Source of the DNA: Calcarisporiella thermophila CBS 279.70
Taxonomy: Eukaryota > Fungi > Calcarisporiellomycota
Length of the DNA stretch: 64,000 nt
Assembly (NCBI RefSeq): GCF_041956535.1
Contig: NW_027192198.1
Span: forward strand, 1-64,000
Direction: 5' to 3'
The position numbers and the translations under genes are program-made. Position 1 is the stretch's first letter. Every line of letters begins with the position of its first letter. The notes under the pieces are model-generated. The model worked only from the letters and a program-made list of their open reading frames with translations. It did not search any database and was not told the DNA's origin. Below are positions 43,636-50,539 of this stretch, in pieces.

Positions 43636-46223
43636 ATGCGTATACTTTTTTTTCTCTCTTTTGTTAATTTATTGCGAGCAGCGCTCGCTCAGAGCCTTAT
43701 GCCTCTACCCAAACTCCAGTGGCTCAACATCAAGGTGACAGATACTTCTCCCTCTCCCTCTCCCAGACGTGATTTCGCTATGGTATATGATGCAAAATTT
43801 AACATGATTGCTCTATTTGGTGGGAGGTATGTTATTTGTAGAACAAGTTGACCAAATGATCGATTAGTAACAGTCTATACTTTATTCTCCCAGATCTGAG
43901 GCCGGGATCCCATTAGGCGACACTTGGCTTTTTGAAACCAAGCAGCTTGTTTGGTCGAGGCCTGCTCCATCTGGTTTATCTACGGATGGTGATCCTCCGG
44001 CGCGATGGGGCATGGCATATGGGCTAGACAATCCACTAGACAACTCTCGTAATAACATGATCATCTCGATGGGACAAGGTGTAAACAATGTCGCTCTGAA
44101 TGATACTTGGGCATTTGATTTCAACTATAAAACTGTAATATCTATTTCTTTTTTGAATCTTTCTCTTTTAACTCATCCAAATGCATATTTTTATAGTGGC
44201 ACAGATTACCTACTTCTGGAGATGCCCCAACACCTCGTTGGGGTGTTGTGAGTGGCATCGACATCAGTCAAGCTAAAAACCCTAACCAGACCATGCTCGT
44301 GAGTCATGGAATGGATTCCAAGAATACCTATACCGAATTGTATAGCTTGACGATATCTGGCCAATTTGCAACAAACGTCGCATCCATGTCTGCCACTTGG
44401 AAGAAGCTTGAAACTTCTGGAAATGCTCCTGGTAAACCTATTTACGATTGTAAATTCAGATTGCATCGTAACTTTTCTTTTCTTAATTAGGCCGGAAGTT
44501 TACTGCTGGCACAATTCTATCCAATAATCGGCTGACGCTCTATGGTGGATGCATCGGCAATAATCTGGATACTTGCCCCCTTCAGGATGGATATGTTCTC
44601 AACACCTCTCCTAATGGCAATACGTGGACAAAGGCAGAAAATTGCTTTGCTCCTCGTGCATATGCTGCCATGACTTACAACCCTAGCACTAAAGATCCAC
44701 AGTTTAGCAATCAGGTTTTCGTGTACGGTGGGGTAGGATTACAGCAGCTTGACAATGGGCAAGAGGGTGAAGTGGGGGTGTTGGATGTCGGCGGAGGGAG
44801 GTGGAACATTATTCTTCCTTCGGGTGACCCGCTGGTACAAGGTGCTTCCAAATACCCTCCGCGTCGCGCTGGTGCTGCTCTTGTTGCATTGGATCAGCCT
44901 CTTGGTAACTCGAGCCTTCCCGCGTACGACATGTTTCTCTTCGGCGGGGAAGATCTTCCCGCAAAAGGATCAAAGCGCACAGGCATGTCAAGTGATATAT
45001 GGGTTCTGAGGGTGTACAGCGATGCGTACTTCGAAGGGAATAATACAGGGATGCCGACGACTGGAGGTGTAGCCGCAACCGGCCAGGGAGTGAATTTACA
45101 ACTCTTTCCGTGCGTCTCCAATGTTCCAGAAAACTCGGACACCGGATCATCGACCAAAGTGTCAGGCATAACGTCAGAGTTGGGTCAGCATGCTACCCTG
45201 ATGGCTTTGTCAATGGTGTTTCTCCCTCTTGCCACTACTGCAGTACGCTTTTTCTCAGGTGAACACAAAGCCGCTTTCAAGTTTGGGGCATTATTGTTGT
45301 ACGCAGCCGCCATTGGTACTGCTATTGCCGGTGGACTTCAAGGCCACTCTGATCAATCGAGCATATCTACACATGGAGCGCTTGGCATAGCTGTGCTCGT
45401 ACTCTCGCTTGGAGTAGCGCCCTTATTGACTGCGTTTATGGTGTTGATCCATTCTATTCAGCGCCGGCGTAAGGCCAATCTCTCCCCTATGTCTTTTGAT
45501 GTATCCAATTGGCTGTCCTCTTTACGCCCATCCCACCGAGCACCACAGAAATCTTTCGAGGTATCGCGTCCCGGAGGAACTGGTAGCCTGCTCCCCGCAA
45601 GTTCAACCAACACTTCTCGAACAGTTGCCTCCCAGAATGGAGCAAGAAAAAGTGTGAATTTCGAGGATTATTCCGGCCACCAACGAGAGACCTCGGCTAA
45701 TCAGAGCGCAATCTCCGCCTACTCCGTATACTCCTCTCAGCTAGATCCGGGTAGTTCTGATGTGCTCTCGACCCCGTGGAAAGTAGCGCGAACCATAGTG
45801 AAACTGATCGTGTATGCTTCGGTAGCTCTCGCCATTTGCTTCGAACTCTATTCTCTGTTCGTCCTTCATGCAGACCATACTTGGTTCTATCTATATCTTG
45901 TATTTGTGCTTGTCATTCTTGTTGCGTGGTTTGTCGCAGCATGGTTCGGATATCCCCGGTTCCAAGGATCGTGGCTTGTTGCCATGATGGAGACCTGCGG
46001 AGGGAGAGGTCAGGGCAGAGACCAATTTCGAGGTGAAGAGATGAGCGAAGCAACTGGCCCATACACTCGTCGGGATTATGAGCCACCCCGCCGAGGCTAT
46101 ATGGGTCAAGAGCCAGAAATGGATGAAGAAGAACAACAGAGAGAACTTGAGGAAGAGGTGAATAGCAGAGATGTCGTTGTGATGACGATTCCGAAACGAA
46201 GATTAACAGTGGTAAATGCATGA
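43636..46223 (+). CDS. Signal peptide + Kelch/galactose-oxidase-type beta-propeller + multi-pass (cytochrome b561-like) membrane protein
   Basis: Repeated PxPR...hhFGG...DTW blades; about six hydrophobic helices; QHATLM and STHGALG; C-terminus RDVVVMTIPKRRLTVVNA. Confidence 0.8.
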
Positions 46224-46924: not shown

Positions 46925-49900
46925 ATGCCATCACAAACAGCACCTGTCGACGGAAGAATAAAGGTACTTGAAGGGGCGGTCAACGCAGGAAATATGTATT
47001 TTGCTAATAATAAATCTGTTAATTTCGGTAAGCAAAGCTCAACCCTGATGCCTGACCCTTTCATCTTATTCTCCTACATCCTCAGGCTGTACCGTTATCA
47101 ATAATGTTAGTGAAGTCAATCTGGAGCTCAGGGCGAAGGATCCCTCCTTTGGTGTTCCCCTTGAGAATAAACAATTCGTCGAACGTAGGGACATCTTCGA
47201 CAGGATTCTCACCGTTTTCGGCGAGGAAAAACCAACAAAAGGGTGTAAAATTGTGGCACTGAAGGGACTTGGAGGAATGGGAAAGACACAATTGATGCTT
47301 CGGTATTGCTACCACCATCGCAAGGAATACAAATATGTATTCTGGCTCCAGGTGGATAGTTGGATGGCGGCTCTGGACTCCTTCCGTAAGCTGGCTATCA
47401 ATTTAGGGATTGAGGAGGGGAGGCTGAAGGAGAAGGATGCACAGGAGGGGATACTGGAGCACATCCGAGGATGGCTTAGGAAATCGACAAAGTGGTTATT
47501 ACTCTTGGACAATGCAAACAAAGAGGTGATCCAGAAGGTGTTTGATCTGTTTCCCGGACTGAGCGGGGATATCATCCTTAGCACGCGAGAGCCTGTTCCT
47601 GAATGGAAAGCTAGGATCATTGAAGTTGACAAGATGTATAGGGACGAAGCGCTTTCACTACTTTTAATGCAAGAGAAGGCTACGATTGACAGGGAGAGTG
47701 CGCGATTCCAAAATGCTATCAGAGTTGTAGAAGAACTTGACTATATGCCACTTGCAATTGGACTTGCAAGAAGCTACATTGATAATACGCTCCTTACCTT
47801 CCAGGAATATTTAAGCCGTTTACATCAACGTCGCAAAATTATACTTGAACATCAAGATGAAAACAGTCCTGGAGAATACAAGCATACCCTTGCAACTGTA
47901 TGGAAAATATCCTTTGAACGAATTCAAAATGTTTGCCCACTGGCAATCTCCATCCTTGAAGTATGTGCATTTCTCCATCCGGATACTATTCCAGTTCACC
48001 TTTTTGAATACCAGCGTTCGATTCTTGGATTCGGTTCAGTTTCTGCAGACCCATCATCCAATATACTCGATAATGAAGATATTAGAAGAGCGGTTTATTT
48101 ATTGAAAGAATTCTCGTTTGTATCGCTTTCATATCACGAAACGGATGGAACGGATGATAAAATTGCGAGTAACAAACTGAGAATCCATCGACTTGTTCAA
48201 AAGGTAGTTTATGAGAACATCACCATACAAGAGAAACAAAGATGGATTAGTAACTTAATTAGCGCCTTGAACAGCGAAATAAACCCCATTGACTCTCATG
48301 ATAGCTTTCACATTCGCACTCGGTCTATCATGGAAATATATCTCCCTCACCTTCGCTATTTGGTTGGACTATTCGACGATTTCAGTAAAACTTGTTTCAA
48401 CTCGAAAAGTTTGAACAATCTTTTGAATTATACAACAGCCTATTTACTGCATAATGGTGAGTTTTTTGGAACTGAAACATTCGCGCAGCTTTCCGTTTCG
48501 CTATCCGAGTCCGTAAACGGAGCTGAGGACCAGCAAACTGCAATTGCTCTTAATAATATGGGATATCTCTACAGTCAACAAGACAAAATTGAACAGGCTA
48601 TTGACCAATACGAGCGTGCTCTAAGAATCCTGGAAAAATGTCTGGGCACAGAGCATCCTGATAATGCACTCATTTTTGATAATCTCGCATCACTATATGC
48701 TGATTATGGCCGATATGATGATGCCGAGCTATTATATCAAAAGGCTGTGTACATCAATGAGAAAGCTTTGGGACCGGAGGATTCTCTTACAGCTCTTTCT
48801 ATAAGTCACCTGGCTGCACTATACGTAATACAGGGCAAATATGATCAGGCTGAATCCTTACATTGGCGTGCACTGAAGATTAGAGAGAAATGTCTTGGAC
48901 CCGAGGATCCAGTCACTCTCCATTCTATACATGATCTGGGCGTACTCTACCAGCATCAAGGGAAGTACGATCAGGCTGAATCGCATTACCGAATTGTCTT
49001 GGAGTCTCAAGAGAAAGTACTCGGTATTGATCATCTGCACACTATAAGTTCTCTTATCCACCTGGCTGGTCTTTACGAAAAGCAAGGAAAGTATGAGCAA
49101 GCTGAACCACTACTGCAACGCGTGCTGAAGGCGCGAGAAAACAAATATGGGACCGATCACTCAATCACTGCAGATGTCTACAATAGTATGGCTTCGCTCT
49201 ATGTCTGCATGGGCAAATATGAACTAGCCGAACCACTATATCAACGCGCATTGAACATCCGAGTAAAAACGTTTGGATCAGAACATCCAGAAACAGCCAC
49301 TTCATATAACAATCTAGCGCATTATTTTGAACAGCAGGACAAATATGATCAAGCTGAAACACTGTATCAACAAGTATTGATAATTCGCTTGAAGACGGTA
49401 GGCTTCGAGCACCCACTTACCGCAAAAGCATTTAATAATATGGCTTCCGTGTACGAAAATATGGGCAGATATGATCAGGCAGAGCTGCGATTTCAATCTG
49501 CTTTGGAGATCCATAAAAAAACGTTGGGTACCGAACACCCGGACACCTTGAGCTCTATTAACAATTTGGGATATATTTACTTAATTCAAGAAAAATATGA
49601 CATGGCTAAGCCGTTATTTCTACACGCTTTAGGGCTTGGTGAGAAGATATGGGGACCTGAGCACCCTAAAGTGCTTCCAACTCTTATTAACCTAGCCTCA
49701 TTATACTGGCATTGCGCCAAATACACTGAGGCAGAAGCGCTGTATCGACGTGCATTGATAATCCAAGAAGAGAAATTAGGACCAGCACATCAAGACGCCG
49801 CAAACACTTTGTGTCATCTAGGCCGTCTCTACATAGATCTAGATAAATATGATCAAGCTGAATTCATGCTCCAGCGTTCACTGGCGATCCGAAAGAAATC

Positions 49901-50539
49901 GTTGGGTGGTGAACACTCGGATACTGCAGTCACTCTCTATTGGCTTGGGCTTCTCCAAAAGATCCGAGGCAATTTCGATCAAGCCGAGTCGCTCTATAAG
50001 CGCGTTTTGGAGATCAGAGAGAAGGTGTTGGGGTCTGATCATCCCATCATAGCTCAGACACTCACCGAATTTGCTGATCTTTATTCACGCCAATGTAAAT
50101 ATAACCTTGCTGAGACTCTCTATCGCCGTGCTCTAACTAGCTATGAGAACGCTTTTGGATTTGAGCATCTTGAATATGCTCGGACGCTCAAAACCTTGGC
50201 TGAGCAGTATGAAAAGCAAGATAATGCGATCAGGCTGAACCGCTTTTCCAGCGCGCACTGGCAATCTTGGATACGCTTTTAGGAGCTGACCATCCTGACA
50301 CTATTGCTGTTCAAATTTTGCTATCTCAGCTCTACGAAGCTCGAGAAAACGCTATGCAAGCCAGACTTCTCTATCAATATGCACAGACTAGCTTGAATCA
50401 TCTTACTAGAAATCCAAATACCCGCTGCTATAGATTTTTCATACTGGATTATCGGTTTATTTCACTCTTCGATCTCCTCATAATACCCATACTCTATGTC
50501 ATAAAGAAAGCAAGCTATCATGAATTTATGCCCAAGTAG
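46925..50539 (+). CDS. Fungal NLR: short N-terminal N/G-rich motif + NB-ARC + 14-15 42-aa TPR repeats; frameshift at ~50223
   Basis: Exon 1 46925..47027, intron GTAAGC..CCTGAC..CAG 47028..47085, exon 2 in frame with ORF 47253..50282; GLGGMGKT, WLLLLDN, LSTR, YMPLAI, IHRLVQ; GxEHPxT...LA.LY..QGKY.QAE.LY.RAL repeats. Confidence 0.92.

Follow-up and report, generated by a model that had tools for sequence, protein, structure and literature searches.

The window analysed here, 64,000 nt of contig NW_027192198.1 of Calcarisporiella thermophila CBS 279.70, contains the gene VTP21DRAFT_10838, which encodes a NOD-like receptor (NLR) and whose first exon codes for a short N-terminal motif and nothing else. 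As judged from its sequence, this exon is a divergent member of a motif family found throughout the genome and not its prototype. The same motif was found at the termini of proteins encoded by three separate genes, two Peptidase_C14 proteases and one patatin-like phospholipase. It is probable that the NLR motif templates a cross-beta fold on these proteases and this lipase and activates them by clustering. A preliminary description of the window had read the motif exon as an amyloid signalling motif (ASM), and that interpretation is supported by the sequence comparisons given below.

The features of the gene are as follows.

46925..47027, + strand: exon 1, 103 nt, beginning with the start codon and comprising 34 codons and 1 nt; it codes for the N-terminal motif alone.

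46952..47026, + strand: motif core, G10 to F34, from the alignments, the hidden Markov model (HMM) tests and the collinear alignment to the patatin and C14 motifs.

47028..47085, + strand: phase-1 intron of 58 nt, with donor GTAAGC, a branch-like site CTGAC at 47052-47056 and acceptor CAG.

47086..50282, + strand: exon 2, coding for a linker, the NB-ARC domain and the TPR array, from Pfam and the translation.

About 47238-47783, + strand: NB-ARC domain, Pfam NB-ARC 3.3e-9.

47265-47288, + strand: P-loop GLGGMGKT, read in the frame of exon 2.

About 48534-50225, + strand: TPR array, Pfam TPR_10 2e-126 in 13 stretches and TPR_12 2e-116.

50222..50539, + strand: continuation of the TPR array, shifted into another frame by a 1-nt break near 50222-50228; this second frame reads as a regular TPR repeat.

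With both a P-loop NB-ARC domain and a C-terminal repeat array, the product is an NB-ARC-TPR NLR of the STAND class (signal transduction ATPases with numerous domains). The ATG of the gene at 46925 and the stop of exon 2 at 50282 were read directly. Upstream, a TGA (47046-47048) closes the frame of the NB-ARC domain, in which the first ATG, at 47277, falls within the P-loop; an upstream exon is therefore required. If unspliced, exon 1 meets a stop at 47102-47104. The preliminary description had joined exon 1 to the NB-ARC domain through a canonical 58-nt intron, and this gene model holds base for base. The spliced product is the public protein VTP21DRAFT_10838 (P0031, 1099 aa), with the same length and the same N-terminus. 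Exon 1 is thus real by independent annotation, and the earlier remark that it was hidden does not stand. Pfam and the other searches were run with exon 1 and exon 2 separately, the spliced protein being represented by the public entry P0031. Pfam detected no domain in exon 1. The P-loop starts near residue 96 and only about 85 residues precede the NB-ARC match, so that no folded effector domain of the HeLo, HET, TIR, PNP_UDP or patatin type fits in front of it, in agreement with what had been proposed. The frame is open for 24 codons 5′ of the ATG at 46925, yet the paralogues share nothing upstream of the Met, which makes further 5′ coding exons unlikely. The public model and the paralogues all start at the Met of exon 1, and no upstream exon adding a domain was found.

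It is highly improbable that exon 1 lies outside this transcript and is an artefact of the gene model. No RNA run is listed for the species, which leaves room for such an error. However, no usable start codon lies in the NB-ARC frame itself, the intron has canonical splice signals and the public model is identical. The two-exon structure moreover recurs in 12 of 14 paralogues (one more with a phase-2 intron) and in the patatin gene described below.

Across the 28-Mb genome, at least 20 loci are paralogous to the window gene in the NB-ARC region, and a short ATG-started exon lies upstream of most of them. Fifteen NLR first exons could be aligned from the start Met (alignment A1), with the consensus M-S-x-Q-T-S-x3-G-N-V-H-A-E-T-G-x2-I-N-V-G-N-x2-Y-N. 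The motif proposed in the preliminary description is present, but the conserved part is wider than the part it had delimited and comprises residues about 2-27 (S-Q-T ... G10 ... G22-N23). The T-V-I-N-N stretch of exon 2, which had been counted as part of the motif, is not conserved in the paralogues. In 12 of the 14 paralogue exons the motif is followed, at a matching position, by a phase-1 GT donor (one has a phase-2 donor, and two have none listed). The window gene shows this phase-1 arrangement, and in the patatin gene, too, the motif exon ends in the phase-1 donor seen in the NLR exons, which suggests that the exon travelled between gene families as a module. In a tree of the NB-ARC region, the window gene was placed within an 11-member TPR clade (support 100/100), and its branch is of ordinary length (0.62, median 0.56). 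From this placement and branch length, exon 1 was inherited by descent with the gene.

Irregular copies of the motif exon were also observed among the paralogues. At L007:2761-2823 the exon stops after 21 codons, and at L010:2304-2390 it has no start codon. At L020:1298-1390 a Leu codon (TTG) takes the position of the start Met, and an ATG occurs six codons upstream. Several paralogous loci carry stops.

The window copy keeps G10, I12, V14, G17-A18, V19-N20, G22-N23 and an aromatic tail ending in V-N-F. One residue is deleted, and R-I-K-V-L-E replaces N-V-H-A-E-T of the consensus. N, G, V and I together account for 13 of the 26 residues from G10 to G35 of the protein. When an HMM was built from the 14 other NLR exons (leave-one-out), the window exon scored 9.5 bits, a value reached by 5 of 5000 composition-preserving shuffles. 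With an HMM built from the three effectors alone it scored 10.7 bits, which was equalled by 3 of 5000 shuffles. Because so few shuffles reach these scores, the similarity is beyond chance. The effector-only HMM ranked the window exon above 7 of the 14 paralogue exons, that is, mid-range among the NLR exons. Over its whole length the window motif could be aligned with that of the patatin (34% identity, z 3.8) and with the tail of C14a, one of the C14 proteins (z 3.1).

These data bear on a different explanation, in which the exon derives from a functional motif but has drifted out of compatibility, the gene being on its way to a pseudogene or to an NLR without an effector. Such a relic would account for the lowest similarity to the NLR consensus among the intact members of the TPR clade and for the one-residue deletion. 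The terminal TPR frame break about 50222 would fit as well, and other paralogues, such as those at L007 and L010 and the several loci with stops, are decaying. On the other hand, the frame of 1099 codons, the P-loop and the splice sites are intact, and the motif has kept its glycines, its G-N turn and its alternation of hydrophobic residues. The mid-range position of the window exon with the effector-only HMM and the ordinary NB-ARC branch length also speak against decay, and we consider this explanation unlikely.

Genome-wide motif searches scored a shortlist of candidates. When the profile of the NLR exons was run against the whole genome, four extra places were obtained. One adjoins NB-ARC fragments. 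Two are the extreme C-termini of the paralogous proteins VTP21DRAFT_327 (C14a) and VTP21DRAFT_383 (C14b), of 365 and 351 residues (P0001 and P0002), and the fourth, on contig C16, is exon 1 of a gene for a patatin-like phospholipase. With the NLR-only HMM, the effector motifs scored 20-26 bits. The preliminary description had found no partner in the window and predicted that one would be unlinked; the two C14 proteins and the patatin are motif-sharing effectors of this kind. A second profile that included the effectors yielded no further motif member in the genome shortlist. Three of the findings which the preliminary description had named as counting against its reading, namely upstream coding exons, lack of conservation of the motif and lack of a motif-sharing effector, were looked for, and the reading passed all three.

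VTP21DRAFT_327 and VTP21DRAFT_383 are Peptidase_C14 proteins by Pfam (6e-12 and 4e-16) and match the 'caspase' model of PADLOC. His89 and Cys140 are invariant across 20 homologues. In the AlphaFold2 model the core has a predicted local distance difference test (pLDDT) score around 90, and the tail, residues 300-351, is disordered, with pLDDT below 50. Foldseek with the core returned the MALT1 paracaspase as the top match, and metacaspases and legumain among the best ones, at about 1e-10. With a modelled caspase-hemoglobinase fold and an intact His/Cys dyad, the C14 partners look competent. In a complex prediction of the C14a tail with NLR residues 1-45 the score was 0.01, which says nothing about binding either way. 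In the patatin gene both the GGGxRG and the GTSTG motif are present. Its Pfam Patatin match covers a 94-aa exon fragment (1.5e-5, 25.8 bits) and is under the 27.7-bit cutoff. Since the gene ends before an unrelated GST gene, the product is a free-standing lipase. The C14 tails and the patatin exon carry a single motif copy each. The patatin gene and a third C14 paralogue were located as follows.

L047:1486-1596 and L054:4900-6364 (G000:C16:694920-696364): patatin-like phospholipase, with a motif-only first exon and an N-terminal motif.

L053:1507-2556 (G000:C39:19122-20177): third Peptidase_C14 paralogue, interrupted by a TGA or an unrecognised intron, with a degenerate C-terminal tail.

The window belongs to contig C8 and the effector genes to C1, C16 and C39, so that adjacency of NLR and effector genes (within about 5-20 kb) is not found here. 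C14b (VTP21DRAFT_383, G000:C1:901032-902087) was observed 10 kb from an NB-ARC-TPR NLR, VTP21DRAFT_386 (G000:C1:911587-912492). This NLR (L009) was tried as a linked partner of C14b and rejected, the motif likeness of its N-terminus having z below 2. A degenerate DNA pattern for G-x-x-[VI]-N-x-G-N gave 9 matches against 2 in the control; five of these were new, had no motif context and were set aside as chance. A search of the genome with Pfam PF04598 found no gasdermin to serve as a caspase substrate.

Closest to the window gene on its upstream side, a 517-aa Kelch-like protein with predicted membrane-spanning stretches is encoded at 44670-46223. It has no amyloid-like terminus and for this reason was not taken as a partner. 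The other neighbours of the NLR gene are unrelated open reading frames.

Apart from gene adjacency, for which exceptions are on record, the architecture agrees with that of ASM systems in general. The motif lies at the extreme N-terminus (residues about 2-35) of an NLR without an effector domain, and the same motif is present at the terminus of separate effector proteins in the genome (C14a, C14b and the patatin). As to the family, the G-phi-Q-phi-G core of PP, RHIM and BASS3 occurs neither in the window motif nor in the family consensus. The PUASM pattern FxGxGxQxxGxGxF is absent too, and the effectors are C14 and patatin proteins rather than PNP_UDP. The HRAM unit of 21 residues is hydrophobic at positions 3, 6, 8 and 14 and has a G at position 17 (PMC5485727). 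Read by eye, positions 6, 8 and 14 and G17 of the family consensus fit this spacing, while position 3 varies; the window copy can be fitted if a gap of one residue is allowed. The lack of a HET-s profile match and of the PP and PUASM signatures is compatible with the earlier suggestion of a new motif family, although the generic HRAM spacing fits by eye. We class the motif as one that probably works like an NLR amyloid signalling motif but cannot be assigned to any named family.

Among the known systems, NWD2/HET-S and the HRAM pairs of Pezizomycotina (Daskalov 2012, 2015; PMC5485727) likewise consist of an effector-less NLR with an N-terminal motif of about 21-25 residues and a separate executioner with the same motif. 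Read by eye, the family consensus also fits the generic HRAM spacing, being hydrophobic at 6, 8 and 14 with G17 followed by N. In contrast to these pairs, the C. thermophila effectors have one copy instead of an R1-R2 pair, no HET-s profile similarity was found, a caspase-like protease and a patatin lipase take the place of HeLo/HELL, and the genes are unlinked. The NLR is of the NB-ARC-TPR and not the NACHT-WD type, and the lineage is outside Dikarya. HRAM3-like (NLR12)/PNP_UDP and other non-adjacent pairs resemble the present case in having a single copy on an enzymatic effector, many NLRs per few effectors (mean NLR:effector ratio 5.7:1) and non-adjacent genes; the effector enzyme and the lineage differ from those found here (Wojciechowski 2022, PMC9815663). 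Mucoromycota-grade fungi and effectors of the caspase/C14 kind do not come up in that study.

The PP cluster HELLP/SBP/PNT1 of Chaetomium globosum resembles the present case in that a single NB-ARC/TPR NLR motif serves effectors of more than one class, a lipase among them. It differs in the G-phi-Q-phi-G core, which is absent here, and in that the C. thermophila patatin has an N-terminal motif and is not SesB-like. Bacterial BASS pairs with a CHAT metacaspase (Dyrka 2020, Fig. S5) also combine a caspase-fold protease bearing a C-terminal amyloid motif with an NB-ARC/TPR NLR as partner. Beyond Calcarisporiella and Endogonales, the best matches of the fungal C14 and NB-ARC domains are bacteria-like sequences, some with comparable tails. 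However, the bacterial pairs are adjacent, whereas the fungal genes have introns, with the motif on an exon of its own, and homology of the motifs is not demonstrable. In the animal inflammasome (ASC-caspase-1) and in BCL10-MALT1, a sensor oligomer likewise nucleates a polymer that clusters a separate caspase-fold protease. Those polymers are death-fold helical ones and not short cross-beta motifs, so this is an analogy and not adaptor homology.

The shared motif could also be a non-amyloid one, making a homotypic contact by beta-strand addition or short linear docking or acting as a common regulatory or targeting tag, in place of a self-templating fold. In favour of such a tag, no match to the HET-s profile was found, and there is one copy per effector where HeLo effectors have the R1-R2 pair. 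But single-copy effector motifs are known in HRAM3-like/PNP_UDP pairs, and the composition rich in N, G, V and I, the G-N turns, the alternating hydrophobic residues and the length of about 25 residues correspond to the description of ASMs (Dyrka 2020, Wojciechowski 2022). Known systems, too, have the motif at a terminus of both partners and a disordered tail. On this evidence a non-amyloid tag appears quite unlikely.

The closest relatives of the C14 proteins were found in Jimgerdemannia flammicorona (Endogonales) and among bacterial-looking metagenome sequences, and several of these homologues end in tails rich in G, N, V and I. Cross-species homology of the motif was not shown, the C14 tails of Jimgerdemannia and of bacteria scoring 5 bits or less with the NLR-only HMM. 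No recognisable motif exon was found within 800 nt upstream of the Jimgerdemannia NLR P0041. The prokaryote-style contig ERZ1740060 NODE_2885 (L058:745-6076) carries a C14 gene with an amyloid-like tail, a gene for a 324-aa protein of unknown kind, a CHAT protein gene and an NB-ARC gene, the C14 gene being 3 kb from the NB-ARC gene. The N-(I/L)-H-I-G-D sequence with which the C14 tail ends recurs in the N-terminus of this NB-ARC protein (z 2.6, 31 of 2000 shuffles). Another bacterial C14 gene, that of P0009, is at a contig end and its context is uninformative. For the NB-ARC region, Calcarisporiella sequences, one Jimgerdemannia protein and some unnamed sequences aside, the best annotated matches were bacterial-type HTH_XRE-NB-ARC-TPR proteins with E about 1e-40, and Dikarya NLRs matched with E 1e-17 or worse, which hints at a bacterial affinity of the NB-ARC family.

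In the proposed mechanism, ligand-induced oligomerisation of the NB-ARC-TPR body would bring several N-terminal motifs together. The clustered motifs would adopt a cross-beta fold, beta-arch or solenoid-like, and this nucleus would template the same fold on the single-copy motif of separate executioners. The executioners would be the two caspase-like Peptidase_C14 proteins, through their C-terminal motif, and the patatin-like phospholipase, through its N-terminal motif, and clustering would activate them. About 15 sensors would in this way funnel into 3-4 executioners.

The data establish the gene model, the motif family and its occurrence on effectors, as well as the caspase fold with its His/Cys dyad and the disordered tail; amyloid formation, templating and the choice of effector by the window NLR are what we infer. 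Several points weigh against this mechanism. Pfam gave no match for any of the 15 motif exons at E up to 10, the HET-s (PF11558) and sigma models included. The profile of alignment A2 run against the PDB found no HET-s or HELLF chain and returned chance TIGIT strands alone. No effector is linked to the window gene, and the pairing is made through similarity alone; since the genome-wide searches score a shortlist, other partners may exist. The window copy is weak against the NLR consensus, with 9.5 bits as compared with 20-48 in strong members, and with its deletion and R-I-K-V-L-E it may not cross-seed with the others. For expression and splicing of exon 1 the grounds are the public model and the structure of the paralogues. 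Finally, the TPR array is broken in frame near its end, ahead of the stop of the public model at 50282. This may be a sign of decay or of faulty assembly, being either a recent truncation or an error of assembly in a short A run.

C. thermophila belongs to the Calcarisporiellomycota, outside Dikarya (NCBI taxonomy). In the literature consulted, fungal ASMs (HRAM, PP, sigma, PUASM and orphan basidiomycete and Tuber motifs) are described in Dikarya only, with HeLo/HELL, SesA, SesB and PNP_UDP as effectors (Wojciechowski 2022; Dyrka 2020; Loquet and Saupe 2017; Daskalov 2023; 2025 review). In bacteria, BASS motifs are occasionally partnered with a CHAT metacaspase (Dyrka 2020), and in fungi these papers describe caspase-like CHAT domains only within NLRs or beside gasdermins. 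A search of the literature found no paper on Calcarisporiella NLRs, no report of NLR amyloid signalling in Mucoromycota-grade fungi and no report of a separate caspase-like effector for amyloid signalling in fungi. Most likely the present case is an amyloid relay from NLR to effector, with effector types (C14 and patatin) and a lineage that are new for such a relay.

Taken more broadly, we tentatively propose, as a possibility that falls somewhat short of an even chance, that this non-Dikarya fungus runs an inflammasome-like relay. Many NB-ARC sensors, bearing a self-templating cross-beta motif on a shuffled exon of its own, would polymerise and activate free-standing caspase-fold proteases and a patatin lipase, and the relay would share ancestry with bacterial NLR/C14 amyloid pairs. 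If so, NLR amyloid signalling would predate Dikarya or have come by transfer from bacteria, and caspase activation would be added to its outputs. If the motif is a working amyloid switch, such signalling would be older or more mobile than thought, and the fungal and bacterial (BASS) systems would be linked through homologous C14 and NB-ARC domains. It would also offer a simple model for polymer-nucleated caspase activation. The divergent motif of the window gene, within one family, would then offer a natural experiment on how far the sequence can drift without loss of templating, and on whether such drift opens private channels between sensor and effector.

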